In this document: positions 2,484-43,356 of the stretch, piece by piece
Layout: each line of letters starts with the position of its first letter
Numbering within the stretch: the first letter of the stretch is position 1
Source of the DNA: Dimorphilus gyrociliatus
Lineage: Eukaryota > Animalia > Annelida
Assembly (NCBI GenBank): GCA_904063045.1
Contig: CAJFCJ010000006.1
Location: 3,984,408 to 4,048,407 of the forward strand
Direction of reading: 5' to 3'
DNA: 64,000 nucleotides
The notes under the pieces: model-generated
Told to the model about the DNA's origin: nothing
Seen by the model: only the letters and a program-made list of their open reading frames with translations
The model's database searches: none
Made by a program: the position numbers and the translations under genes

Positions 2484-4995
2484 TCAAGTAGATTGTTCAG
2501 GTAAATCTTGACTAAAATATGGTTTTGCTTCAGGCACAAGCATAGTATGACACACTTGACACACTTTGGCAGGTCGTCTTTGAGGTCCACTAAGCACCGT
2601 GTTAGAAACACAGTCAGCACAAAATATTCTACCACAATGCCTACAGTGATGCTTTCTTCTAGTGACTGTAAATGTAGTTTTACATTTATTACATTCGTCT
2701 ATGTCTTCTTCGTTTTGCCAACGAACTTCCGTTTGCTTTGCCCTTTCACGTTCGAGTTCAATCTGTAAAGATTGGGATAACTTGACGAAGTCTCTTTGGA
2801 CGCACTCACTGTTGTTTAAATCTTCTTGTAAACTTGACACTTTTATTCTCAACGTAGAGACATCGTCCATTACTTGCTTCTTAGAGTCTGTTTCTTCTTT
2901 TAATTTTTTTCTTACTTGCATCAATTCGGTATTAAGAGCATCTTCTACGCGAGATCTCTCAAGTTGTTCCGAGTGAATTTGATCTTTTATAAATAAAATT
3001 TTGGAATTTAACTGTTCCTCTATATGTTCTTTTGCCACTTTAGCTTTTATGAGCTCTTCACGAGTTTGAAGCAAATAAAATTGTATTTCATTTGGATCAG
3101 TGGGCAGTGATATCTCTGCTTCTGCTAGCTGAGCAGAATGAGCACCGTATTTTCCAAGCAATGACTCATTTTCTGCTTGAAATTTACGCAGCTCTATTTC
3201 GGCTTGTTCTCGTTCATCTTTAACTTTATTTAACTCTAGATAAAGTCTATTTTTCATTTCATTGAAATGATGACGCAGACTTTTATACGCATCCGAAGTT
3301 TTTTTAAAGTCTCCTCTTAAAGCACATATTCTTTCATCAAATTCCATCGATTTAACTTTTAAATTATCTTCTAGTTCATCAGCATAGGATCTTAATCTTG
3401 CACTGGCTTGTCTTTCCGAGTCTAAATATCTTTCTAAAGTTTTCACGTGAGAATTAGCCTTCATTTCAGCTTCTTTCACTTCCTCTAATTTCTGACTAAT
3501 TGTACCACACTTTGCGCATTTCTCAGCACTATCTTTAATATTCTTACTTGTGTCCAGAGTGGCTAAATAAATCAAAATGATAAGGAAAAATGATTAACGA
3601 AAAATTGATAATTACATTCCGAAGTGGATAGATCAAGATTACTCAGATTCAAGAAACTACTATTTCCTTCGCTTTCCAATTTTGCTCTGGCCTCACGTAT
3701 TTCATTTAATCGATTTTTCGTTGATTCCCTACCTTTATCCTCTTTTTGCGATTCTAAAAGATTAAAATTATTACGCATAAGTAAATGCAAGTAATGCATA
3801 TAACCTTCTATTTTTATCTGCTGCTCTTCTGATATAAACTGCATAATTCTTTGAATATCTGTGGAAGAAACCTGCTGTGCTAATTGCCATTCTTCCAAAC
3901 TTAAATCATGTAATTTTTGCATATGATTTAACTCCCTGGAAATATCATGAAGGTTATTCTTAAGGCTATCGACATCTTCCCCAGAGGTATCCTTATCGAT
4001 CATGCTATCATTCAGTTTCATTCCTTCGTTCGTTTTCGAACCATCAATTATCTATAATTATAACAGGTTCAATTAAAAAATGATATTTAAATAACAACAC
4101 TAAAAGAATTTCTCAGTGCTTCATTTGCTTTACTCTTGGACAAAGTCAATAATGCACTGAGACATTAATTATTTCCGTAAAAAACAAAATGACACTGTTA
4201 TAGTGTGTCTAGTTTTTTGCTCATTTTATTTTTACACTTGCTTTATGTACGAAAGTACAAAGTTTTTATTTAAAAAAAATTTCCCATCCAACTTAAAGAG
4301 ACTATTTTAAAAATTTTGGCTTAGAATCAAAGTAAATAGAATGAAAGGACTTAGGGAAAGAATCTCTGGGAAAAAAGCATGCAAAATAGACAAAAAAGAA
4401 CACTAGGTACTTCGGTAATGTATGTCTTCAGAAAAATAATTCGATTAGACAAAATTTGCTTCCATAGAACCTATTCCCTCTTTCATAAATTTTCTAATAT
4501 TTCTTTTATATAAGTAATGGTCAGTGTCGACTTACATATAAGCATTAATATTTCTTTTTTAGAATAGATGTTATAAATAGCAAAGAAAGAAATGATATAA
4601 TAGTAAGTTTTGTATCTCATTTCAGCAAAAAAATACATGCCATTATCCTATAAGGAAGAAAGATGATTATACCTCTCCTTCTTTTAGTCGACATAATTCC
4701 TTATCCCGTTCACTTAATTGTTTTTTTAATGACTCGATTTCTTCTTCAAATGGTAAAACAATTGAACGTAAGATTTCTGCATTTTCTTGAGCCTATACGT
4801 AAAGCAATTATCTTAATAGTATATTTCTCAGAATTATTCTATTTCTTGTAAAAGCATACTTTTTTCATACTATCTTCCAGATTTTCTGGTTCACTACTAG
4901 AACTACCCAATGATATTTTCTTTTGAAAGGTTTTGGCGACTGATGACAATAAGCCATCCCTATCAGAGGTTAATACATACATATACTGTATATAA

Positions 4996-9100: not shown

Positions 9101-11807
9101 TTTACTGGGTCTCGAATATTTTGCCTTAATGTATATTCAATGTCATGTGTAGAGGTGCCACAATCTGCCTCAATGTACCAGTATCTTGAAAAGAAAAACT
9201 ACCAGTAAGACATCAATTTCCAATCTAATCAATTTCTCATCAGCTTTAATTAATTTTAGGGGAGCTTACACAGTCGCTTGTTTGGGTGTCACTGATGGAG
9301 ATTGGAATACCTTAGCGTTAGAGGCTCTTGAAGGCTTAAACTTAGATATTTCAAAAAGAGCATTCGTTAGAACAAAAAATTTAAAATATCTTGAATTAAT
9401 AAGTAATATAGAAGAAAGAAAAAAGAGAGGTGAAAATGATCCTCAAGTCTTCCTTGGTGATATTTTCGCTTATGAGGGTAAATTTAATGAAGCCGCTAAA
9501 ATGTACAAAAAAGCTGGACAAGAGCAGAAAGCCATGAATATGTATACTGATTTAAGAATGTTCGATCAAGCTAAGGAATTCCTGGGCACAGGTGATCAAG
9601 CAGATAGGAAAAATTTAATCAGCAAGCAGGCCGATTGGGCAAGAAATATTAATGAACCTAAAGCAGCTGCAGAAATGTATATATCGGCTGGAGAATACTC
9701 AAAAGCCATAGACATTATTGGAGATCACGGATGGGCTGATATGTAAGTGAAAATCTAGTAACGATTCAATCGTTGTAAGGAGATTTATATGTTACATACT
9801 TTTAGGTTAATTGATTTGGCTCGAAAACTGGATAAAGCAGACACTGAAAACCTTAATAAATGTGCCTTTTACTTAAAAAGGCATGAACAATATGCATATG
9901 CAGCTGAAACTTATATGAAAATGGGCGATACGAAAGCTTTATTATTGCTTCACGTAGAAGCCAAGCAATGGAGCGAGGTAATATATGAGTGCATTTGAAA
10001 ATTTCTAAATATAATTTGCTATATATAAATATTTATTCCCAGAGTTATTTATTAATTAAAATAAATAATCTTTCATTTAGGCATTTGAGCTGGTTAAAAA
10101 GCATAAAGAGTTTAAGAATGATGTTTACATACCTTACGCCCAGTCGCTAGCAGAAGAAGATAAATTTGAAGAAGCACAACAAGGTTAGATAAACTAAAAA
10201 ACCTGCAATGAAATATGACTACTATTTTAACTTTTATTCAGCTTTTCATGAAGCTGGCTTGGAAGAAGAAGCTGTCAAAGTTTTAGAACAACTTACTAGA
10301 AATGCTGTTACTGAAAATCGATTTAACGATGCAAGTTATTACTATTGGAAATTATCGATGCAGTGCTTCGACATTGCTCAGCGTAACTAATTTGTTACTT
10401 GTATAGATAAATTCTATTAATCACTTTTCTTTAATAATTAGAGGATGAAAATAAAATCTCAATAATGATTAAGAAATTCAAGGATTATCAAAAGAAAGCT
10501 GCAATTTACCACGTTTTTCATTCAATATTCAAATTTGTCGTGAGTGAAGATTCTAACAAGAGACAAAGTAATCTAATAAAATGCCTTATTATATCACTTT
10601 TCTAGGAAGAGCCATTTACTTCTGATACTCCAGAGAATCTCTTTCACATGTCGAGATTTTTGTATCATGAATTACAAACAACTGAAGTCCCGGACGGTGT
10701 CTCTAAAGTGTACGTTTAACAAATAATTGACATAAACAAGTTCGAGTCGAGTTACATATGTCTTCTTTTAAAAAAAATAGGGCAACCCTTTATACACTTG
10801 CAAAACAAAGTAAACAATTGAATGCTTTCAAGTTGGCTAGACATGCATATGAAAAGTTACAGAACTTAAAGATTCCAGCTAGATATCAAGAAATAGTTGA
10901 TATTGGAGCTATAACAATACGTTCTAAAGCCTTTCATGATGCAGAGGTTTGATCATATTATATATACCCTGAAGAAAAAAACCATAAAATTTTTAAAAAC
11001 TCTTTTTAGGATCGCTTACCTATGTGTTATCGTTGTTCAACCACAAATCCTTTACTGAATAATCAAGGAAATATGTGTATTAACTGTCGACAGCCATTTG
11101 TCCATTCTTTCATTTCATTTGGTAATTATATATTGTCAAATGAGATAAAAATAACGTTTCTTGTTTGGTATTAATTATGATTCAGTATAATAATTCAATT
11201 TACTATATGCCAGAGGTATTACCATTGGTTGAATTCTTTCTCGAGGAAGGCATTGATGATGATGAAGCAGTCCAACTGATTGAAAGCGCTCCAAGGAAGA
11301 AAGACAAGCAAACCGCTAGTGAAACAAAAACAGCCAATATGCAGAGTCTACGAATGGATGATTTAAGCGCTTTCGAAGAAGGGGAAGGGAGCAGAGAGAT
11401 AGCAGACCCATTTACAGCTAGTATGATGTCTTTTGAGGTTAGCCTGTTCTAAATAGTACGATTTAAATTGTTAATGGAATTTATTAAACTTTAGCAAGGA
11501 AGCTCGGAGTTTACTCCAGTAGTAGTAGGAAGAGAAGCACTTAAATCACTTCAGAGAACCGAAATTATTGTTATTAAGTGGCCTCCACCGCTGAGAAATC
11601 AATATTTCAAGAATTTCATGCCTGATGTTCAAATTTTGGTTTCTTGTCCAGACTGTAGAAAGGTATTGTAACGTATTGCTTCTATACTTAAAGAACTAAT
11701 ATGTTAATCCTTTCATTTTTCAATAGCTGTTCCACAGCGACGACTATGAACTAAAAGTTCTTCAAGATAACGCTTGTCCATTCTGCAGAAGTGCAGTAGA
11801 AGATTAA
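6193..11807 (+). CDS. IFT122: Intraflagellar transport protein 122 (IFT-A), many short introns
   Basis: [10 protein letters not shown] start; [71 protein letters not shown] and [19 protein letters not shown] closely match IFT122. Confidence 0.97.
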
Positions 11808-12137
11808 AGAAATTACAAAAGTACAAAATTACAAACTATTATAAGGTCTTTCTCAAAATATTTCGTAACTAAATCACCTATCCGTCCTTTAATACACACC
11901 ATTTTGCCAATTATATTAATCATTAAATTTTTAAATGTATCTATTCACGAAGTATTACTAAATAGTTTTTTTCAAAAGTATTTATTTATAAAATAATATA
12001 ACACCAGTTTATTTTTTCTATAGCATCTTAAAAAATAAAATAAGTTATATTAATAAAAAGTTGTATTTAATATCGTTAATTCGTTTTTTAAATTAGAATA
12101 ATAGTAAAACATTATCTAACCAGTTTTGTCTTACGAA

Positions 12138-15100
12138 ATGAATCAAACGAATTTGTTCTGTTCTCTTTTATATTTATTAATTAGTTTAAAAGTTTTATTG
12201 ACTGAAATAACTTGGACTTTACCATATATTAAAACAAGAAGAGATAGTTATAAAACAGATTTATTTAGAGGAAATGTTGAATTGCAAAAATTTAAAAATA
12301 AACATTCAAACGGTATCCGTCAGGCTTTATACGGTTTCGATGGTAACGTATCGTCTTGCGTAGAAAGTTCTATGGAACGTCACCCTTGGATAGCTGTTGA
12401 TCTGGAAGATAATTTCTATCTATTGAAACTTTTCGTGTCTGGTAAAATAAAAATATAAAAATAATTATATAGGATCTCACTAAGAATATGCGTATCTCTT
12501 TCAGGTAAATTTTTAACAGCTCTAACTATTGGGCTTTCGAAAAAATGGCCAGATAGTAGTTCCAATAAGTGGAAAATAGGATTTTCTTTGTGTACATTTA
12601 TAGCTGATACAAGTAATCATATCAATGCGTCTTGTGAGGGACTAAGTTATGGCCGTTATTTCACTCTTGCATCTGAAAGCTCTCAAATGATTTTATGCGA
12701 TATACGCATTTTTATAAAAGAAGGTATAGTTTATTTATAAAATCTTTTGTTTGATGAAAGCGTGAACTTACATAACAGAGAAACCTACCCAAGACAAGTT
12801 AAAGAATGAATCTTTTTTGCTTAATAGCGAAATTTACTTTGAAGGCCAAAGAGTGCTCAAATTAACGGATAAAAAACTTGAAACTTGTTTAAATGCGCAC
12901 AACTTCGCAGCAAACAAGCTGCATCGTATAGTTGTAGGCCTTCAAACTATAGAAGCCATTAAAAGCGTTGTCGTTCAGACTAACTGTAAGCTTTTAAGTC
13001 CTAAAAATTGTCATCACTTTTAATATTGAACAAAATATTTTAGATCCTTTTATACCTAACCTTATTATTGGAGTCTACAATAGATCTTCCAAACTATCAG
13101 AGGAGAGCCCTTCGTTTAATGAATCTAATATTAGATTTTGTGAAGTTAGCAACTGGAACAGTATTGTAAGTAAACATTTTTCTTGTTTGACGAAACAAAG
13201 TACACTGGTTGGAGACACGCTCGTCATTTTTATACAAGGAAAACGTGTTCACTTGTGTGAGATTGCTATTTTTAAACCATCTAGCCAAAGAGATTTTAGT
13301 AATCCTATAAACTTGCGAATTACAAGAAACTTCAATCTTAATGAGAGAAATGGTTCGTTTCAAACGTTATAAAGTTTTTGTAAACTTTAAAATAGAATTT
13401 TTTTTCTCCCAAGAAAAAGATTTTCTTACTTTGCCAATAAAAGCAGATGTAGCGAAACTGAAACCTACTCTCTCCTCAAGGTTTGTAGGAAGTCAACAGC
13501 CATCATATGCAGTAGACGATTCACTGAAGTCGTGTGTTCTGCTGGAGAGTAACATTGGAGTTGAAAGATGGATAGCAATTAACCTTGGCTATCCATTTGT
13601 TTTAGGAATTTTCGAAATATATAGTCCAAATAGGGGAATAAAAACTCTCGATATAGGCTTAAGAGAAAATAAACCAAAGGGAGGTAGGGATGATTCAGTC
13701 GCATGTCAATCAAAGACCGACGCGTACCGTGAAACTAAACTCATAATGGCATGCATTAGTGAAATAACAGCTAGGATTGCGCTTCTCAAGAGCTTGGACC
13801 ACCATTTCGAAATATGTAACATCAGAATCTTTCCTATTTACCCAGAAACCTGTTACGAATACAAGCCTGCCGCAGAGGGTATCGAGATGGACGAGAGGGA
13901 AATTATAGCAAAAAAGGTTCTTCATAATGAAAATTTTATAGATAGATGCGGCGATTGGTGTAGTAGCGACCCAAAATGCGTGGCCATCGATTTCATTCAT
14001 CTTTCGAAGAACAACAATAAAACTGAATGTAGAAAACTTTACAAGACATTGTATCAAACTAAAAGATATGAAAAGTCCACTAATTCAATTCATTATGTGC
14101 GAAAATCTTGTATGATAGATTTGGAATCACATCCCAAAATAGTAGCAAACTCAATTTCGAGTGCAAAACGCATAATTTATTCCGGTCTCCGTGGTCTTGA
14201 TGCTATAACACTATCAAAAATAGTTGATAATAATATATTAACCTGTCTTACGGTTCAATCATCCTTTCAAAGAGCTTGGATAGGAGTTGATATGGGTAAA
14301 GTAAATATTATTGGAAGAGTAAAGATAATTGGTGGAAAGAATGGTATCGGTCCACTAAGAATTTCTGTTGGCTATAGCGAGCCCACTGTAAATTGGCCGG
14401 ACAATGAAGACTTGTATGATTGTTATTTTTTGCCACATGTATCTTCTGAACTTGATATTCGATGCAAACCTTCTTTAAAGGGGAGATATGTCATTATTTT
14501 CTCCAAAATAGGTGGTAGTATAAATGTATGTGAAGTTTATATCTTTCCTTTGAAAGGTAAATTTTCTGTTCAATGGAAGCCTCCCTATAGCTTCCATGGG
14601 AGGATTCCATGTCCTCTATGAATTACATATTATAACCCTTACATATTGTCTGTATTTCAGCCTCAAAAGATGAAAGTAGGTGGGAAAAGAGTAGGTCTTT
14701 TATAAACTTTCCTATAATATACAAATACAATTGCAACTATTGTAACTTTCCCCCTTTGATAAATAGCCAACATAGCCTTGCACAAACCGCCAAGGTACTT
14801 CAATAGCTATTATAGAGAATTATCTGATGGCAATTTAGTAACTTGCTTTAATTTCGGATTACAACCTTCTGAGCCTGATTGGATTGTAGTAGATCTCTTG
14901 CAACCATTCTTTGTCAAAAGTATTGGGCTGACATCCGAAATAACAGAGACCTTGCCATTGATTATATCTGCTGTATCTAAAGATGCTTACAGGTACAACA
15001 TTCTTAGACGAGATTATTCCCTGCAGAAACAAGATTTTCTTTTTATAGAGGCAAGAAATCCATAAATAACGAGCAAATCTGTTGGAAATTAAATAAGCGA

Positions 15101-18100
15101 AAGATACACCATTTAGCGTCATGTAATAATACACGTGGATCAATTTATGGAAATTTTATAATAATAAAGCTTACTGAATTTAAGCTAAACTGGAAAATAT
15201 GTGAGATTGAGGCCTACTCAGGTAATATAAATACGAAAGATTTCTTTTTATTGCTCCTCAAACTTTAAAATAGATAAAAGAAATCTTTGTACATATTTCA
15301 AAAAGTCAAATGCCAAAGAAAAATATCAATTAGTAAAATGGAGTATAGTATCTGAATCAGACTGTAAAATTCAATGTTTAGTATTGGATGAATGTCGAGG
15401 TATTGCTTTTGGCCAGAAGTCGTGTAGACTTCTTTTCTTAAAGAGTAGTGATACTAAATTACCCCAGGAGGAGAACACACTTGAGTATTATGAAAGAACA
15501 TGTGGTAATAACTCTTTCTCGTTTTGTATTTATAGTAAATATATTGAAATTGATAATATATCTTACAAAATTAGATGAAAACGACTGGCGTCTCCAAACT
15601 AGTAACCCTTTTTTCCTTTCTTCCCAAAATATAATTAAATTAATATTCATTATTTTTCAAGAGATAATACCTATTAAGAAACCAACACTGCTTTTTGATA
15701 ACAATTTTAAATCTTGTGTACCTTTTTCCAAAGTTATATTAAAGAAAAACTACTTTGTCACAGTTGAATTGGAAAAATTTTCAATTATTTCAGGCTTCAA
15801 AGCTGAGATAAAAGGTACCAATAATTTTTTTATCGCTTTACCTAAACTGTCAGAATTAAAATGTGCTTCAGTTGAAAGTCCAAAAGCCTATGATATTGTA
15901 AATGTAACAACACATGAAAATAAATTTCTATCGATTGACAGAAAGAGATCATATTCTGTGAAACATTGTGCTACTATTCTTATCCTTAGTAAACAAGATG
16001 ATGGTGATCTTGTAACTGTAAACAGCAGTTGTAAATACTTTTCGCTTAGTAAATTTATGACTTTTGAAAGTCTTTTTGGAGATTCTCTTCTATCGATATG
16101 TGAATTAGAGATCTACACTCTAAACTCAAATTCAGGTGTGATAATCAATATCAATGGGAAAAAATATTTACAAGATAATATTATAGGTAATCTATGCAAA
16201 TACTTTTATCAATGTGATACCAGGGGCGAATGCACATTTGTTTCCGAAAACTCTGTTGAATGCTCCTGTAATTATCCATTTTTTGGCAGAAGATGTGAAT
16301 TTCCAATTACAAGTGATAGTAAGATAATGAATGCTCCATTTTTGTACTACTTAATTATACTCGTTTCTCTTCAGTACAGCGTGAAACACTTTCCAGTACA
16401 TTATTAGTGTTTTAAGGAAAACTAATTTCGGATTTGCATTCTGAATAACTCTCTTTATATTCCCTGTTAGGATTTAACTGCATCTTGTGTACACAAAACA
16501 ATGGCGTATGTGACGTTAAATATGAAATTTGTAATTGTCCAAAACTGTCTTACGGAACAAACTGCGAGTATAGCACAGCATCAGGTTTAATTCTTCGGTT
16601 TTATTGTTTTAATATTTATTCAATATATCTATTGAATAACAAAAATTATATACTTTATTTAATTTATTTCCTAGAAAATGATAAATTAATTGATTTCGAC
16701 AAGGAATTTGATTCTGATAAAAGTAAACAAAATTAAAAATAACAATAAAAAAATGTAAATCTACTATTTTAAAATATTTTAGTGAATTTAGCAGCAGCTG
16801 CAATTGTTGAAGGCATAGGGATCGCTAATAGCTGGAAGCTAGTCGACACTTCATTACAAAGTTGTTATACTGTTAATATAGACAAAGAATTCATTATTTG
16901 GCTAGAGAATTTCTATTTAATTAGAAAAGTAATGGTGTTTGCTGACAAAATGGGTTTGGGAACTAAAATTTATACTCGTATCCTATGTCCAATAAGGTGC
17001 TATTGGCTTAATATAATTTCTTTCAATTTATTCCTGCATAACACAAATTCCCTTGTAGATGGATAAATGATACAGCATCAAATGGTATACTTCAAATAAC
17101 AAATGACTGTCCTTATATTGCGGGAAGCGTCAGTAATTTTGTTCGAATAGTATCTCTACGCAGTAAAGTTAGATTCTGTGAAATTGAAATCTATGCAGAT
17201 AAAAGACGAAGTGAATTAACATGAATTGTCTCATGCAGTTTTCCCATAATTACATTTTTTTCTTTGCGAAACAGCACTTTGCACAACACTAAATTCCAAG
17301 CCAGAAGACGAGATTATACTATGCCGTAAGTGTATGAAATACTAAGATTTTCGGGGAAAAATAATCTTGTATCAAGTTATTATTATGTAAACAATTTTTA
17401 CAGCGGAGATCGACCCCTATATTCACGTTGGGTTTTTACCAGGTTAAAAACTTTTCACTAATAATAATAATTGCTGAACAAGAGGATGTTTTTGTTCTAT
17501 AGATAATTTAATCAATCCTCAATTACAAGTAGATTCAAGCCTCGATATCGATTATAGCAAATCGATTGATGGCGATTTAAGTACTGGAACTTACATCGGC
17601 GGCTTTAGAATTTTGTCCAATTTTTGGGTTACTATTCATTTGGAAAACATCAAAACTTTAGGTCGAGTTCGAATTTCTGGTGAAAAAAATACTGTTGGAG
17701 TATTAGCCGTGTCTGTCTATACGAGAAACTACCGGTATAAGCGCCGTTGCTTTACAATACCTGAAAAACCTTGGAGCGTAGTAGATCGATCTTGTATCAG
17801 ACAAATTGAGGGGATAGCCGTTAGTTTACATGCATTCACATCAAATCCGTTTTATGCTATGTTTATATCAGAAATTCAAGTCTTTTCAGTAAATTCTGAA
17901 CATCCATGTTTAAGATCTTTATGTCAAAATGATGCTGCTTGCGAAAAGTAATAATGCATTTTTTGATAACTTAAAGTTAACAAAATACTTCTTATAGAAT
18001 GGGAAGCTCATATCGTTGTATTTGTAAAGAGGGTTACAAAGGAAATCGCTGTGAGATTCACACATGCGAACTTGGTAATCGGCTGTGTTCCAATAGGGGA

Positions 18101-19400
18101 AAATGTCTTATTGTTTCTGGGAAACGCAAGTGCCAATGCGATCTTAAATACTCTGGGGACAAATGTGAGGCATTTGCTGATCCTTGCGAGAAAAAAAAAT
18201 GCTTGTCAGGATTGTGCATAAGAACGGGAGATGGCAGCTCTGGCTCATGCTACAATATACCAGAAAGTTCATATACTACAGATGGTTTTAAGCTTAATAA
18301 TTTTACAACATTATTACCTAATATTGGAAAAACTGAACCTCCAAAACCATCGCTTGTAGAAAAGAGTGAAACCTGTCCGCAAAAGCAATGCATAGCTGGA
18401 GTGTGCCAGCTGCAAAACAAAAATTATGAGGAAAATAATTGTAATTGTTTCTCGGGTTGGACAGGAAAGTTTTGTGCTAGCCAATTAAATCCGTGTTACA
18501 ATAACCCCTGCCAAAACGGAGGCATATGTCTACCTGGCCCTATAAATGACTACCTTTGCAATTGCCCAGAAGGATACGATGGCATCAACTGTCAGATTAA
18601 TTTGAGATCGGACTTAATGGAGATAGAATGTTCTCCAAATTCTTGTTCAGGTCACGGTTATTGTCGCGAAAACTTTAACAAAGAAATACAGTGCGTTTGC
18701 TACGAAGGCTATCACGGAAAGAGATGTGATAGAGTAATTAGTTGCAATGAAATGAAGTGTAGAAATGGGATATGCCATCAAAAAAGTATTAACAAAGAAT
18801 TATTACCAGCTGAATGTTTATGCTTGGGTGGTTGGACTGGAAAATATTGTCAAATAATAGCTAACCAATGCTTACTGGTGTAATTTCATTAATTTAGCTA
18901 TAATAGATTACTAATAGACCCATTTCAGTTACCTTGTATTTCGGGAAACTGTGAAATAAAGAAAAGTAATGGATCCTATGTTAATGCTAAATGTGTCTGT
19001 GACGCAGAATATGAAGGTAAGTATCTTATACAAAAGATATCTATTTCTTTGAAAAATCCATTATTTACATAGGAGTTGCTTGCGAAGTGCATAAGAAAAG
19101 CGTATGTTACAATCATAAATGCTTTAGAGGCTATTGCATTCCTGATATAAATGGTATAGATTACAAATGTAAATGTATAGCCGGATGGAGAGGAGCCTTT
19201 TGTGATGAACAAACAATCAAGACAGAAAACAAAAGTATTTCTATAATAATATTATATTATACTAGTATATTTTATATATTTTATTGTTTTCAGTTACCGT
19301 TACCTTCAGTGATACTTTTCAAATTTTCATTGTATTCTGTTTATTACTATGCGTTCTTATTATTTCAATTATTTTTGTAAACATCTACTTCTTTCAATGA
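12138..19400 (+). CDS. Large type I membrane protein (about 1,900 aa): signal peptide, 8 degenerate F-type lectin (FTP/F5-8C-like) domains, 2 PAN/apple domains, about 11 EGF-like repeats, C-terminal TM helix
   Basis: Hydrophobic leader; repeated (V/I)D.....C.......W...(D/N)L ... GRY.......(L/I)CE(I/V).(I/V)F units, including NIALHKP at about 14770; PAN-type C-x3-C-x5-C cores at about 13950 and 15370; EGF cysteine patterns at 16190-16570 and 17900-19210. Short GT-AG introns keep one frame; the last exon (19294-19400) encodes the TM segment. Confidence 0.8.
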
Positions 19401-19564
19401 GTGTTTATTAAGCTGATATTTATTTTTAAAGTGGTAAAATTTAACGTGAAAACAGTCAATAGTTGAATTGTTTGTTTTAATTAATCAACAAAATAACTTA
19501 GTGATAGATATTTTAACTTGGAAAGTTTTAGAAAAATAAGGGAAACAATAGACAGTTTGATAGT

Positions 19565-20879
19565 TTACATAATTATTGCTGTAGAAATAATTTCACCAAA
19601 GACATTTGGAGTTTCTTCTGTCACATTTTCACTCTCCGAATCATTTTTATCCAATATACTATTTGTTGCTTCAATAACTTCTTGTTTAAATGCGTCATTT
19701 TCAATTGTATCGTGTAGATTTAAAAATTCTCCATCAAAATGTGATAAATCTGAAGGTTCACTCTTTACTTGCACTGGAATTTCGTATTCACTTGAACTAC
19801 CACTTGATGTATCGTCACTTGGTTCACTAGATGACAATACACTGTCGTTTGGTGGATAAAAACCCCGTCTTCGCCTTCGGCACTTTTGTTTCTGAACCCA
19901 TTGAGTTGATTGTGAATCAGAGTGGTCGATAGGACTGGCAGTTTTCTTACTTCTTCGGCTATTTGGAGGCTTCCTCCTTGGCATCACGGGTAGAGTTGTA
20001 TTTGCACAATCTAAACACTTACACAAATGAGAACATGTTATACCCGCTTCGAAGCATTCGCAATACTTTTTCAGACATCCGCTTTTCCGGCAGTGACAAC
20101 CTTTGTAATGAAGCCTTGAACGAACTTTTGGCTGGAATGCCATTGGATTCCTTTCAATACAAGCCGTAACTGCAGCTCGTCTAAGGTGAGTGTGACCATC
20201 GGCATCGGTGTTATGACAATTATCACAACTACACCATGCACCGCAAACCTCTCGACGTGCGAAACAATCGCAATACAATTTTAGACATTTTGATCGTCGG
20301 CAATTACAAGGTTTTGTCGAAGGTCTGGGAGGTGCTAAAGCTTGCAGTTTTTCGTTAACGTCCTCACTACGTTTCTTAGATCTTTGCCTGCCGGTCCAAG
20401 GCGGAACAAGCGGAGTGTCAGAATATAACTGAGGGGGTGGGGGTGGCAAAAATCCCGGTGGTGGCCCATAGGGAGGAGGTCTCGGTAATGCTTGAAAAAT
20501 AGGACGCCCGTTCATTGGAAATCCTGCAAAGGGTCGACCAATTGCGAAAAATTGTTGAGCATGGCGAAACGGTGGAGGTTGATATAGAGAATAAGCTGGA
20601 TGATGAGAGATGTGATGAGGTGGATGTGGAACGGGTGGCGGTCGATCGTGCGGAGGTGAAGAATCGTGTTGAAACGATGCGAGATAAGTACTCTCTTCAT
20701 TTCGGTTTATGGACGCTTAAGAAACAAAATGTTACGAATAAAAAAAACCCCAATACAAAAACTAAAATTCAAAAGTTTCAAAGACAACTTTAAATTCAAA
20801 ATGTTTTTTTTAAGAAGATAAAAGAGAATAACTCAAAAATTTGAAAAAAATTCTTACTATCTCTTCCTTCCTCTGACAT
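19565..20879 (-). CDS. CRC-domain (tesmin/TSO1/LIN54-type CXC-RNPxAFxPK-CXC) protein, about 390 aa, 2 exons (20879-20858; 20715-19565)
   Basis: PCNCRRSKCLKLYCDCF...RNPMAFQPK...KGCHCRKSGCLKKYCECF. The frame is open upstream of the ORF-track ATG to an AG at 20716 and joins a GTAAG-terminated exon MSEEGRD. An alternative in-frame ATG lies at 20885. Confidence 0.85.
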
Positions 20880-29031: not shown

Positions 29032-30405
29032 TTAAAGTTCGTCTCTTTGTTTCTTGGGATTGGAGGCTAAATACTTTTCATAAGCGTCCCTGGGATCAAT
29101 CATCCAATGCTTATGAAATGATATTGGTATCTGACTGTTAATAAATATAGCAGCATAATCAATAGGCCTCGCCTGATGAAAAAGTGGCGAATGAACAACT
29201 TTAGCCGATATTCGAGATAACCATAAGCCTATTAGCATATCGTCTGGCGAACTGTGGGATGGACAGCGGCAATCTTGACATTCCATGATAAGCTTTACTG
29301 CTTGCTTGGAAAATATCATACCACCCCCACCGGTAATATAAGAGTACCCGTAATCTTTTGCTAGTCCAAAGCCATATTTTTCACCGATTGCAATTGCTTC
29401 ATTCGGATCATAACAACTTAATATTTTCCTTAATTCCGCTATGTTGATAAGTGTATCATCATCTGTTACTACTAACCAATCTCTTGAATCTGGAAGTTCG
29501 AAGAATGTTTGAAAAATTTCAAAGCACTTTGAGCAATGTCCACTTTCTGTATTTGGAGCTTTATTTAAAATTAAATTTGGAACTGTACTATCTTCTTGAT
29601 CGGAAAAAAATCTCACACTTTTGGAATTTCTAATATCTTTATACCAAGTATCCAATATCACAGGTATTCTATCTTTGTGAAATAGATGACAAGTTTTTAT
29701 TCCGATAAAGAAATGATTATCGCTCGTTTCTCCTCCACAATCCGCTTTAATTGTTGAAAAGTAAGAAGCGCATGCACTCACATATTTTGTACACAACCAG
29801 TTTACTGATTTTAGTTTAGGACCCTTTCCTTCATTGTATATGTATTTAGCTAATTCGTATTGAACATCTATAGTAAAGTCATCAACCTTCTTTAACCAGT
29901 TAGAGTAGTCTTTACCAAGCGTCTTGACAAGAGACATTGAAAATATTATACCACTAGATAGAAGGGGATAAATAAGTTTTCCTGGAGTATCGAAATGATG
30001 TATAATTGTTACTTCCTGATCCTTTAAGCCCAGACCAAAATAAATGGCTTTTTTCTCATTATATTTAGCTAACTTTAAAGAAAGCTCTTGAGTAATAAAT
30101 CGTGTATCTTCTGTACATACTACAACCCACTTTGCTTTGGAATACTTAACTTTTTTTGATATTTCATTTAAAACTGGTATTATTAGGAATGCTCTTTCTT
30201 CGGTCAATAACTCGGAAAAAGAGACTACACTATCGCTCGCTATATCCTGATCGATAAGGTGTTCTTTAAAATTTTTGTATCTTATCAAATGTGTAGATGA
30301 TGGCTCATCTCGAACAGTGAATAATATATCTCCTACACAATCGATTCCAACTGCCAGTAAAGTGAAAAAAATCAAATTTATAAAAAAAAATGATACAGAC
30401 GCCAT
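29032..30405 (-). CDS. B3GLCT: Beta-1,3-glucosyltransferase (fringe-like GT31), intronless, 457 aa
   Basis: Signal peptide; WLVVTDDDTLI, GYSYITGGGGMIFS, PDDML, HSPLFHQARP and PISFHKHW motifs; C-terminal RDEL ER-retention signal. Confidence 0.93.
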   Translation of the reverse strand: MASVSFFFINLIFFTLLAVGIDCVGDILFTVRDEPSSTHLIRYKNFKEHLIDQDIASDSVVSFSELLTEERAFLIIPVLNEISKKVKYSKAKWVVVCTEDTRFITQELSLKLAKYNEKKAIYFGLGLKDQEVTIIHHFDTPGKLIYPLLSSGIIFSMSLVKTLGKDYSNWLKKVDDFTIDVQYELAKYIYNEGKGPKLKSVNWLCTKYVSACASYFSTIKADCGGETSDNHFFIGIKTCHLFHKDRIPVILDTWYKDIRNSKSVRFFSDQEDSTVPNLILNKAPNTESGHCSKCFEIFQTFFELPDSRDWLVVTDDDTLINIAELRKILSCYDPNEAIAIGEKYGFGLAKDYGYSYITGGGGMIFSKQAVKLIMECQDCRCPSHSSPDDMLIGLWLSRISAKVVHSPLFHQARPIDYAAIFINSQIPISFHKHWMIDPRDAYEKYLASNPKKQRDEL

Positions 30406-33329: not shown

Positions 33330-34631
33330 TTAACCAAAATTCGGGTTGTTGGAATCCATATCAAGGAAATCAGTGAAAGTTGCTAACATTGGGTCATAAT
33401 TATTTGAATCGTCATTCAAAGTATTGGCGAATTCGTGATTGGAATCAATTACGCTTGGATCTACAGTTGAGCCAGCGGGTCGATCATAATTATTCAATTG
33501 GTCTTCATATGGAAAAGTAGGTAAAGTGACGGGGATGGTAGGTGTCGGAGTTGCTCCCTTGCCCTTAGTTATTTTTTTAATAACTCTTTCTTTTACATTG
33601 TCTGAAACGGTACTGGATGAACACTGAAATTCGGAACCACTGAAAAGTGGAGATTTCTTCTTTCTTTTTATAGACATTTCGTAGTCGTTATTAGGATGAT
33701 AAGTAAATTCGATTGGTTCAGACTTCAAATCTTCCGACATTCGTTTTAAGTACATAAAAACTTTGCACGGCTCAGTTATTTGGAAAGGGAAGGGTGGTGT
33801 CTTAAAAACGATAGCTACTTGATGATGAACATCTGTTGACCCAAAGTTGCCTTTATCCATCCAGTCTTTACATTCAAAGATAATTTCCACATCATCTTTT
33901 GATGTTAACTTGTCTGTTAGCATGAAAATTTCTGTGCCACCGTTCACAGAACCAGCACAAGCACTAACTCGACAAATCTTCATTTCACCAGGTGTTTTGT
34001 GGTCAAATATTGGCTGAGTTACAATTGGTGGAACTACTTTTCTGAATTGATTATTTGATTCAGGATCGGGCAGAAAAGCTTGAAAACATATTCTCACACA
34101 ATGAGCATCAATATTACTCGGATCATTTATATGATCAAAACCATTACCATATGGATCTACCCGAATTTGCTGTCTTTCTTGTAGTTTATCTTTTACTGCT
34201 CTTTTCTTGGCGCACCTAATTCCCAGATTTTGAAATTTATAAGTAGTCTCACCATTTTTTAACTTGACTGTGCAAACACCTTTGTTACATTCCTTTCCAA
34301 CTAAGGAATGAGGATGAGCTCTGTATGGTTTATCCCTAGTTACGCAGGAAGCTACAATTATAGCCTCCGTAGCATTGCCCATGTTACATAACCGTATAGT
34401 AGGGTAGCTTTTGTTCTCCTCTGTCGATTTTTCCCCAGGAATATGACCTGCATATCGTCCTTCGCATTCATATCGAAATCTTTGTCCTTTTTGTCGAGGT
34501 TCTTCTATTATCTCCAAGTACGGCTCTGGATACGAAAAGGGATATTCGGCGCATATCGCTAAAAATATCAACAATTAACTATAGCTATTAATAAATACGT
34601 AATGTAAAATTTACTTACCATGCTCATCCAT
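33330..34631 (-). CDS. Rel/NF-kB transcription factor (Rel/Dorsal subfamily: RHD + IPT + NLS, no ankyrin repeats), about 420 aa; start uncertain
   Basis: PYLEIIEEP.Q.GQRFRYECEGR, HPHSLVGK.C, FQNLGIRC, VRICFQAFL, VHHQVAIVFKTPP; NLS KRKKK. An upstream exon ending MDEH joins at AG 34559-34560. Confidence 0.92.
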
Positions 34632-41448: not shown

Positions 41449-43356
41449 CTAATCTTTATTATAATTTGTCGAAATTGTACATTTTAGTGAATTCAATTGA
41501 GTTGAATTACATGAAAAGGCAGAATTAAATAGTTTACTACTGCTGAACGTTCCCATTATTATATCGGTTATTTGATGTAAATATATCCCACTAGATAAAT
41601 GGCTAATAGAAGTGTAAGCCCTACAATGACTTTGTATTAACACTAAGTAAAACAGTTGATTATCATTTAAAGCAATCCCTGGTAGAGTAGAATTAGTACC
41701 ATTTTCTTCCATTTCTCTTTCATAAACTGTTTGAGATATTCTTAAAGCTAGTCTAAACGCTAACGCTTCTCTGATGAAGTTTTTATTATAGTTATCGTTA
41801 AACTTAAACTGCCCTACAACACATTGTTTTTCTTCGGGAAACAAAGAATCATTTTCTCTTAAGACGCTTTGTATCAGATGGTGTGCTAATAAAGTTCCTA
41901 GATAGCCATATCTTAGAGAAACCGGAAGTTTATTTAAGGGAGAAAAATGAGCAATAGCCTCAGGTGATATTAATAATGCCTTCTTCTCATAATCATCCAA
42001 TAGAATATCATTTTCTTGAAGACTACTATTTGTATAGGACATGTCAAATGATCTCTGTTCTCTTAAATGAATAATCATTTGAATAAAGGTTAAGTTTTTT
42101 TTAAATGGCCTCTCGATTAAATTTACTGTTTCAAAGTCAATTTCGACATTGATATATCTAAATCTTTCAACTCTTGCTCCTAAGACATTCTCAACCTCTC
42201 CTCTAATCTTATTGAAAATATCATTTATAGTATCTCTGTCTAATTTTATCGTAGTTTGTTCGGTATCTTTATAGAAAAGGTATTTAAAAAGATACGGAAA
42301 GTATTGGTCAGTTAAGTGAAGGCATCTTGTTTGATATTTAGCCTTGAATGATCGTTGAAAGTCAATTATATGCCGAAGTTCAAAACTTGCCCTAAAAATT
42401 AGATAATTATGTAAATCTTCAAAAGGAGTTTTCTCAATTAGTTCAATTAATTTATCAATTTTATAAAAATCTTTAAAGACTATATATTCGTAAATTTCCG
42501 GTGAAATATTATTAATTAATCTCTGAAAGTCAATAAGACCATTAAATTTATTTGCAATATCATCTAATCTTAATGGTTCTTCTGTTTCTTTATCGTTTGA
42601 TTTAGAAAATTTCAATAGTTCTTTCTCTATATTAAATATACTATTAATTATTTTTGAACGATGTTCACTATTCAAAGAAGGATACAAAGAATAAAAGAAA
42701 TGAGACGCAATATTCCTCAATGGAATCGAATTATCTTCATTAAAAGAATTAGATAGTGTTAAATAGTCTTTATAAACTTCTATTCTATCTTTAGTCAATT
42801 TTAGTTTAAAGAAAACGAATATTTTCAACTGATGAAGTTTGATTAGCGTCTCTCGAAAGACTTCTTTAAGATTTAGTGTGTCCCATTTTTCTGACGTAAG
42901 ATACTTAACTCCTATTTCGTCTAAAAGCACTTTCAAATGATTCGATTCATTTTTACGAAAATATTTTAAACATGAATGAAAAAATCTCTGTTGCTGTTTA
43001 AATATAGTTGTATTTTCGCTTAGCTCTTGTTCAATTAAGGCTAACTTTAGAGCATTGTAAACGTGAACATTGTTTACAGAGTCTCCGTTAAATGGAGATA
43101 AACCGCATGAAAAATAATTAAAGTTCGTACAAGGGTTCTCATTTAAATTCATAAGCTTTAGCATTGATCCAGCAAGTTTTACACAATATTCACTACTACA
43201 AATATTACTAGCATCGTCAGTTTTCAGTAATTTACACCATTTAGAGTTTGCCTTTTTAACCTTTTCTTCATGTGACAAAGTTATATTTAGAATATAATTT
43301 ATTACCAGAATGATTATTAAAATATAATGTATGTTTTTTATAAAATCTAGCATCAC
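41449..43356 (-). CDS. Neprilysin/ECE-like (M13) protein lacking catalytic motifs, intronless type II membrane protein, 635 aa
   Basis: N-terminal TM; C.SEYCVKLAGSML..MNLNENPCTNFNYFSCG; LPGIALNDNQLFYL..IQSHC. The HExxH position reads AHHLIQ. Confidence 0.85.
   Translation of the reverse strand: MMLDFIKNIHYILIIILVINYILNITLSHEEKVKKANSKWCKLLKTDDASNICSSEYCVKLAGSMLKLMNLNENPCTNFNYFSCGLSPFNGDSVNNVHVYNALKLALIEQELSENTTIFKQQQRFFHSCLKYFRKNESNHLKVLLDEIGVKYLTSEKWDTLNLKEVFRETLIKLHQLKIFVFFKLKLTKDRIEVYKDYLTLSNSFNEDNSIPLRNIASHFFYSLYPSLNSEHRSKIINSIFNIEKELLKFSKSNDKETEEPLRLDDIANKFNGLIDFQRLINNISPEIYEYIVFKDFYKIDKLIELIEKTPFEDLHNYLIFRASFELRHIIDFQRSFKAKYQTRCLHLTDQYFPYLFKYLFYKDTEQTTIKLDRDTINDIFNKIRGEVENVLGARVERFRYINVEIDFETVNLIERPFKKNLTFIQMIIHLREQRSFDMSYTNSSLQENDILLDDYEKKALLISPEAIAHFSPLNKLPVSLRYGYLGTLLAHHLIQSVLRENDSLFPEEKQCVVGQFKFNDNYNKNFIREALAFRLALRISQTVYEREMEENGTNSTLPGIALNDNQLFYLVLIQSHCRAYTSISHLSSGIYLHQITDIIMGTFSSSKLFNSAFSCNSTQLNSLKCTISTNYNKD

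Follow-up and report, generated by a model that had tools for sequence, protein, structure and literature searches.

The locus examined here raises the question of whether a series of fragmented open reading frames in the genome of a miniature annelid encodes one large surface protein and, if so, whether the lectin-like modules of that protein still recognise sugars. The window, by which we mean the whole stretch of DNA that was analysed, comprises 64,000 nt of Dimorphilus gyrociliatus (GenBank assembly GCA_904063045.1, contig CAJFCJ010000006.1, positions 3,984,408 to 4,048,407 of the forward strand), and the gene in question lies between positions 12138 and 19400 of this window. The original prediction, made from the letters of the DNA, described a surface protein with F-type-lectin-like, PAN and EGF modules in an unfamiliar combination, and suggested for it a role as a glycan-recognition, adhesion, gamete-recognition or immune receptor. 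Our analysis points, with moderate confidence, to one compact gene of 19 exons whose product is a membrane-tethered mosaic of F-type-lectin-fold and other modules that probably acts in adhesion or matrix anchoring, and not as a canonical lectin or a signalling receptor.

A single reading frame spans the locus

Between 12138 and 19400, the fragmented open frames of the + strand can be spliced into a single unbroken reading frame by removal of 18 GT-AG introns. The exon model, which was built from stop-to-stop open frames together with reading of the sequence, is as follows.

12138..19400, + strand: whole gene, 19 exons, 5,721 nt, 1,906 codons, ATG at 12138, TGA at 19398-19400
12138-12441, 12505-12723, 12779-12985, 13044-13352, 13414-14556, 14767-14992, 15049-15221, + strand: exons 1-7, GT-AG model
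15274-15504, 15662-16318, 16471-16584, 16783-16996, 17059-17210, 17275-17325, 17404-17442, + strand: exons 8-14, GT-AG model
17503-17947, 17998-18877, 18929-19016, 19073-19234, 19294-19400, + strand: exons 15-19, GT-AG model

None of the 19 exons contains an in-frame stop, and most junctions are in phase 1. Intron length ranges from 50 to 210 nt (median 60.5 nt); the published median for D. gyrociliatus, which has a genome of 73.8 Mb, is 66 bp (PMC7854359). GC content is 34.7% in the exons and 25.2% in the introns, in a window that is AT-rich overall (about 31% GC), and each of the introns contains stops in two or more frames. Some open frames run to 436, 321 and 300 codons and exceed by far what chance would produce in such AT-rich DNA; at the stop frequency of the window, the chance of a 436-codon open frame is about 1e-13.

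Read through this model, the protein has the order signal peptide-D1-D2-D3-PAN-D4-D5-PAN-D6-EGF-EGF-D7-D8-about nine EGF-hydrophobic C-terminus, in which D1 to D8 denote the eight lectin-like modules. A 19-mer hydropathy scan found only two hydrophobic segments, at the extreme N-terminus and the extreme C-terminus. The proposal that the fragments splice into one protein thus gains support, as far as the DNA itself can speak, from a frame that is continuous over the 18 junctions, from a domain order that is the one claimed, and from hydrophobic segments that are confined to the two ends.

A different arrangement has to be weighed at this point, namely that the locus holds two or more genes, or neighbours that were wrongly joined, such as a secreted lectin-like/PAN protein followed by a separate EGF membrane protein. 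Two considerations weigh against a single gene and would suit this arrangement: the single transcript and several of the splice choices follow from sequence logic alone, and four introns (14557-14766, 15505-15661, 16319-16470 and 16585-16782) are longer than the rest, at 210, 157, 152 and 198 nt, or 2-3 times the typical length. Retention of intron 5 would also end the frame after 21 codons. Against several genes, no Met with a hydrophobic leader was seen at the start of any internal exon, no exon before the last ends in a stop, phase is continuous at 18 of 18 junctions, and there are just two hydrophobic segments, one at each end. Moreover, with EGF1 and EGF2 preceding D7 and D8, the module types interleave and do not form two blocks, known genes bound the locus at either end, and paralogous genes elsewhere in the genome bear the same module types. 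We consider more than one gene to be quite improbable; the reading as a single gene with this architecture fits everything that is visible in the DNA.

Several details of the model are tentative. The link between D7 and D8 is carried by two mini-exons, both in phase 1, that were placed by GT-AG boundaries and phase continuity only.

17275-17325, + strand: tentative mini-exon with two Cys
17404-17442, + strand: tentative mini-exon

Skipping both of them also preserves the frame. A candidate in-frame intron of 39 nt, likewise tentative, lies inside D6 (15815-15853). Nor is the last intron (19235-19293) secure; if it is left unspliced, the protein still ends in a hydrophobic run. Within the 210-nt intron 5, an open stretch on the + strand (14661-14794) shares the phase of exon 5 and runs up to a good donor (AAG/GTACTT); if used, it would shift the frame of D5, and it may be a decoy or an alternative exon. 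A search of positions 11500-20000 with Rfam found no known RNA above threshold, and we rejected the idea that the longer introns host known RNAs, as no Rfam match falls inside the gene.

The repeated modules are closest to F-type lectins

Searches, alignments and structure predictions used single-exon queries, with the modules that are split by an intron (D1, D2, D5 and D7) handled as halves. When single open frames were searched with Pfam, the lectin-like modules gave only sub-threshold matches to PF22633 (F5_F8_type_C_2) or F5_F8_type_C, and because all of these fell below threshold a profile built from the modules themselves was needed. The eight modules and the evidence for each are listed here, in which the E-values of leave-one-out hidden Markov models (HMMs) refer to an arbitrary Z of 1,000.

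12258..12723, + strand: D1, F-type-lectin-like, split by intron 12442-12504; PF22633 E 0.0021, HMM halves 22.0 and 23.7 bits
12779..13285, + strand: D2, divergent F-type-lectin-like, split by intron 12986-13043; weak, halves 8.1 and 13.5 bits in correct order
13414..13835, + strand: D3, F-type-lectin-like; leave-one-out HMM E 2.3e-8
14112..14556, + strand: D4, best-preserved F-type-lectin-like; PF22633 E 2.2e-5, leave-one-out HMM E 4.3e-18, AlphaFold2 predicted local distance difference test (pLDDT) score 75.7
14767..15221, + strand: D5, F-type-lectin-like, split by intron 14993-15048; PF22633 E 0.027, halves 21.6 and 14.7 bits
15662..16134, + strand: D6, longer F-type-lectin-like; leave-one-out HMM E 1e-6
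16783..17210, + strand: D7, divergent F-type-lectin-like, split by intron 16997-17058; weak, halves 9.7 and 12.2 bits in correct order
17503..17897, + strand: D8, F-type-lectin-like; leave-one-out HMM E 1.4e-11, F5_F8_type_C E 0.22

Six of the eight modules (D1, D3, D4, D5, D6 and D8) are well supported by leave-one-out or paralogue-only HMMs. The module profile, which we refer to as A1, was built by aligning the four uninterrupted modules with eight half-modules, and its common pattern reads D-x-N/G...C, then W-I-x-V-D-L, then C...C...G-R-Y-V...L-C-E-I-x-I-F/Y. When A1 was compared with all PDB sequences, the top matches were the eel agglutinin 1K12 (E 1.9e-5) and the striped bass FBP32 structure 3CQO (E 2.2e-5), with the next matches about 1,000-fold weaker (E ≥ 0.025). 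In addition, the four conserved cysteine columns of the modules align with four cysteines of 1K12 in the HMM alignment; D8 lacks the first of them.

Structure prediction gave a consistent picture of the fold. An AlphaFold2 model of D4, computed from a 10-row alignment, had 1K12 as its top Foldseek match, and VIA-align placed it at Z 12.4 to 3CQO (root-mean-square deviation 2.5, 120 aligned) and Z 12.1 to 1K12. Two results nonetheless count against a confident assignment of the whole series: bacterial CBM32 modules tie structurally with F-type lectins for D4 (Z 12.1-12.4), and D2 and D7 are weakly supported, at 8-14 bits per half with the halves in the right order. Taken alone, the fold is a galactose-binding-domain-like jelly roll, and since CBM32 ties on the fold, it is the sequence profile, together with the cysteine pattern, that gives the F-type label. 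As the best label, discoidin (F5/8 C) and CBM32 were considered and rejected on profile E-values and cysteine pattern, which separate them where the fold cannot. A phmmer search with D4 alone against PDB was set aside, as neuropilin discoidin domains and F-type lectins were inseparable in it (all E > 0.3). The original prediction had labelled these modules 'FTP', and this label is upheld insofar as the A1 profile and, for D4, the top Foldseek match place them closest to F-type lectins; by VIA, F-type lectins and CBM32 are level for D4.

The canonical fucose site is absent from all eight modules

The F-type lectin domain (FTLD) family is defined by the motif HX24RXDX4(R/K), corresponding to His52, Arg79 and Arg86 of AAA, together with a calcium motif, hhDGx (PMC5712786, PMC12221842). 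The fucose motif, in either a strict or a loosened form, was found in none of the exons. In the alignment of A1 to 1K12, the column of the motif His, two residues past the first conserved Cys, is occupied by E, N, L, T, N, P, T or G in D1 to D8; the Arg columns of the fucose triad are not Arg, and the vicinal Cys82-Cys83 pair is absent in all eight. The calcium motif is retained in D1 (GFDGN), D5 (LSDGN) and D8 (SIDGD) only, and the other five modules keep its Asp and not its Gly. Both modules of P0006, a database protein that resembles exon 5 and is described below, likewise lack the His-Arg-Arg triad and the Cys-Cys pair. These substitutions suggest that canonical binding of terminal L-fucose has been lost from the modules.

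A working multivalent lectin, for instance an immune pattern-recognition molecule whose eight modules bind glycans at a non-canonical site, could still be proposed. The fold and the nearest sequence relatives of the modules are carbohydrate-binding (F-type lectins and CBM32), three modules have kept hhDGx, PAN domains can bind carbohydrates, and the fold matches of PAN1 include the galactose-binding SML-2. Reviews also describe FTLDs in which an altered motif goes with altered specificity, and it counts against our account that modules without the canonical triad could still bind glycans by way of other residues. On the other side stands the finding that the His-Arg-Arg triad and the fucose-contacting Cys82-Cys83 are both missing from every one of the eight modules, a pattern that is repeated in the two P0006 modules, and the same reviews judge motif-deficient FTLDs such as that of Drosophila furrowed unlikely to bind sugar; furrowed itself acts in adhesion (PMC5712786, PMC12221842). 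We regard a working lectin as unlikely, albeit the strongest of the alternatives. Glycan recognition, which had been suggested for this protein, is unsupported as far as canonical lectin binding goes, because no module has the fucose-binding motif.

PAN and EGF modules and the membrane tether

Between the lectin-like modules lie two PAN/apple modules and a pair of EGF modules, and a longer EGF array follows D8. A count by hand gave two EGF modules in the stretch from D6 to D7, with about nine more following D8.

13836..14111, + strand: PAN1, PAN/apple module with six Cys; PAN_4 E 0.056 (sub-threshold)
15274..15504, + strand: PAN2, PAN/apple module in one exon; Pfam PAN_1 E 2e-4, 21.6 bits against a cut-off of 21.4
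16195..16584, + strand: EGF1 (end of exon 9) and EGF2 (exon 10, 16471-16584), with intron 16319-16470 between them; six-Cys pattern, weak Pfam EGF
17898..19234, + strand: membrane-proximal array of about nine EGF-like modules, from the last part of exon 15 through exons 16-18; Cys patterns

PAN1 and PAN2 have five invariant cysteines in common with P0006 and with the repeats of P0004, an unrelated PAN-repeat protein. The AlphaFold2 model of PAN1 was of low confidence (pLDDT 65.6) and all of its Foldseek matches were weak (E ≥ 0.24), with a list made up mostly of PAN/apple folds: the apple domains of FXI and prekallikrein, the N domain of HGF, plasminogen, leech antiplatelet protein, an Eimeria PAN domain and SML-2. 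The EGF assignment is unambiguous; in exon 16, Pfam EGF matched at E 7.4e-21 (74.5 bits against a cut-off of 21.5, in 5 stretches) and EGF_TEN at E 8.8e-22 (78.3 bits); six-Cys EGF patterns are present in exons 9, 10, 16 and 18. One module of the array after D8 is degenerate, with 4 Cys, and the array also has a Cys-free linker of about 35 residues.

The two hydrophobic segments bound this series of modules.

12138..12206, + strand: signal-peptide-like segment of approximate extent, residues ~4-28 of exon 1; maximum mean Kyte-Doolittle hydropathy (KD) 1.99
19294..19400, + strand: C-terminal hydrophobic anchor of about 24 residues, with one further residue before the stop; maximum mean KD 3.55

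No cytoplasmic domain follows the C-terminal hydrophobic run in either the spliced or the unspliced version of the last intron, and the protein thus does not have the form of a type I transmembrane receptor, in which a transmembrane helix is followed by a cytoplasmic domain. The designation of the protein as a receptor in the signalling sense therefore finds no support; a hydrophobic segment that ends the protein indicates a membrane or glycosylphosphatidylinositol (GPI) tether instead. The run may act either as a transmembrane anchor or as a GPI signal, two possibilities that the sequence does not separate.

Relatives in databases and in the genome

With exon 5 (D3-PAN1-D4) as the query, an exhaustive phmmer search of 1.84 billion representatives returned only five proteins at E ≤ 1e-3. 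None of these five is a full-length annotated protein of the gene, a result that proves little given that short representatives may hide longer cluster members. One of them, P0001, is a 91-aa fragment whose 90% cluster includes P0006, a protein of 392 aa encoded on a Logan assembly contig of 32.9 kb. Aligned with exon 5, P0006 shows 64% identity across 382 collinear residues, and both limits of its open frame fall within 4-6 residues of those of the exon; judging from this correspondence, P0006 is most likely a conserved orthologous exon in a related species. Another relative, P0003 (1,053 aa), combines two FTLD-like modules with about 17 of the EGF type and appears, by eye from its translated modules, to be the counterpart of a paralogue on C15 that is described below. 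The other matches of exon 5 were bacterial discoidin-type proteins and one PAN-repeat protein. Word-index searches with exon 5, exon 9 and the module alignment A2 gave no matches within a length window that leaves out proteins of about 1,900 aa.

The module profile was also searched across the 77.9 Mb genome assembly, where it matched at C6:1.337-1.340 Mb, C6:1.686-1.690 Mb, C15:0.894-0.899 Mb and C10:0.980-0.991 Mb. The paralogues on C6 and C15 contain the same divergent FTLD-like module (E 1e-11 to 1e-7), and at least two paralogous genes in this genome have several such modules and an EGF array. The paralogue at C6:1685000-1697000, 2.29 Mb upstream, is much larger, with several FTLD-like modules and more than 30 EGF modules that include calcium-binding ones, and the junction between its FTLD and PAN modules aligns with D3-PAN1 (E 0.002). 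It lies directly downstream of a Smad (MH1/MH2) gene. The paralogue at C15:894000-899300 has at least four FTLD-like modules followed by about ten EGF modules, in an open frame of 949-978 aa. In both, the same module precedes a long EGF array, as it does here, but the number of modules and the length differ, and the modules are only 20-30% identical to those of the present gene. These similarities suggest that the gene belongs to a small family of paralogues, each with several modules and an EGF array, and the P0006 sequence suggests that the family reaches a related species.

Matches to PF22633 (F5_F8_type_C_2) are more widespread, with at least 83 in the genome at many loci, several of them in open frames of about 460 aa. 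One such locus lies 260 kb downstream of the window (C6:4307783-4308508, - strand). A near-canonical fucose motif was found in one of eight strong PF22633 loci examined (C99, with a His-to-Arg spacing of 25), and from these eight loci PF22633 in this genome is mostly non-canonical too.

The pattern of relatives bears on the proposal that the protein serves in gamete or mate recognition, in analogy to oyster bindin, which has tandem F-lectin repeats. According to reviews, oysters use tandem FTLDs in sperm-egg recognition, and the gene seems confined to close relatives and has substantially diverged (64% identity; 5 matches in 1.84 billion representatives), as such a role would have it. Paralogues with the same kinds of modules favour a general structural or adhesive family instead. 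We consider gamete or mate recognition very unlikely, and the gamete-recognition and immune roles that were named for this gene are pure speculation.

Comparison with known systems

Searches of the literature and of protein and profile databases found no named family with the same architecture. The claim that this is not a known named family therefore holds for the exact architecture, and the broader claim that the combination is unfamiliar holds only in part: no named family has it, but paralogues exist in the same genome, and clusters of mollusc and cnidarian proteins pair the same Pfam domains. In the ESM Atlas, where similarity reflects language-model features with no alignment or E-value and cluster names are automatic, exon 5 was most similar to mollusc 'fucolectin-like' PF22633+PAN_1 clusters (0.95) and cnidarian PAN/PF22633 clusters (0.92), and P0003 was matched by MFG-E8/EDIL3 at the top (0.91-0.92) and by mollusc 'MEGF6/11-like', 'PEAR1-like' and 'SREC-like' PF22633+EGF clusters (0.88-0.89). 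These clusters show, at the level of domain content, that the pairwise combinations of domains are not unique to the gene. The mollusc 'fucolectin-like' and cnidarian PF22633+PAN_1 clusters have the same pairing, but at about 230-250 aa; the mollusc and cnidarian clusters are much smaller than the present protein and contain one or two modules, and neither phmmer nor the word searches linked them to the gene.

Among better-known proteins, F-type lectins (AAA, 1K12; MsaFBP32, 3CQO) give the best profile matches and share the jelly roll and the arrangement of FTLDs in tandem, and four cysteines align. They are, however, small soluble serum lectins, whereas the protein described here is a membrane-tethered mosaic of 1,906 residues with PAN and EGF modules and without the fucose motif or the vicinal cysteines. 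MFG-E8/lactadherin and EDIL3 resemble it as extracellular adhesive proteins in which EGF modules are paired with jelly rolls of the galactose-binding-like kind; their order is reversed, with EGF first and discoidin C-terminal, their modules are of the discoidin type, and they are secreted, whereas the present protein is anchored. The closest functional analogy is Drosophila furrowed, a cell-surface mosaic in which an FTLD without the canonical sugar-binding residues takes part in an adhesion protein (PMC5712786, PMC12221842). Furrowed has one FTLD with CTLD and CCP modules and the present protein has eight with PAN and EGF, and homology between the two was compared at the level of modules only.

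Genes surrounding the locus

The gene is flanked on both sides. Upstream lies IFT122 on the + strand, whose last coding stretch ends near 11668, leaving a spacer of about 470 nt before the ATG at 12138; downstream, a CXC/LIN54-like gene occupies 19565-20515 of the - strand. On the + strand, a SNORD19-like box C/D match below threshold (19531-19603; 25.2 bits against a cut-off of 35, E 0.4) is outside the gene, at and just past the 3' end of the LIN54-like gene, and is probably due to chance. Other genes of the window recognised with Pfam are all on the - strand.

63-1094, - strand: rhodopsin-type G-protein-coupled receptor
2484-3575, - strand: Rabaptin-like/FYVE protein
29032-30405, - strand: Fringe-like glycosyltransferase
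33330-34574, - strand: Rel-homology (NF-kB/Dorsal-type) factor
41449-43356, - strand: M13 peptidase

Discussion

We favour, with moderate confidence, the explanation that the protein is a tethered adhesion molecule or matrix anchor. The eight F-type-lectin-fold modules, two PAN modules and two EGF modules would form a distal head that presents multivalent binding surfaces, and the membrane-proximal stalk of about nine EGF modules would hold this head out from the cell. The lectin-fold modules may serve as multivalent surfaces for binding proteins, or for binding glycans in a non-canonical manner, and the whole could act in adhesion between cells, in adhesion of cells to matrix, or as an anchor of the apical matrix, in the way of Drosophila furrowed. 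We infer an adhesive or anchoring role because the protein cannot signal by itself. Adhesion is probably the right description, but it is drawn from architecture and analogy, and this indirectness must be set against it.

One may postulate a more specific scenario in which the F-type lectin fold has been re-purposed for sugar-independent recognition of proteins, in a family known to date from this worm and a probable close relative alone. The protein would then mediate species-specific recognition between cells, be it of gametes, of dwarf male and female, or in the attachment of epidermis to cuticle, with each of the eight modules presenting a different surface. We think it rather doubtful that the protein is so specialised. 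Lineage-specific extracellular mosaics of shuffled phase 1 modules are common in invertebrate genomes, and because they are common the gene opens no long-standing question. As a lineage-specific and probably adhesive or anchoring protein, it is a fairly ordinary mosaic, that is, a new arrangement of known modules that are often shuffled.

If the model of a tethered adhesion or anchoring protein is right, the gene would provide a clear new case among the few F-type-lectin-fold domains that have lost the fucose site and are nevertheless kept under selection. It would support the reuse of this fold for adhesion over the sensing of sugars, an idea that has been raised for furrowed. It would also define a small annelid family of lectin-fold/PAN/EGF mosaics and offer an entry to the study of surface adhesion in a miniature annelid.

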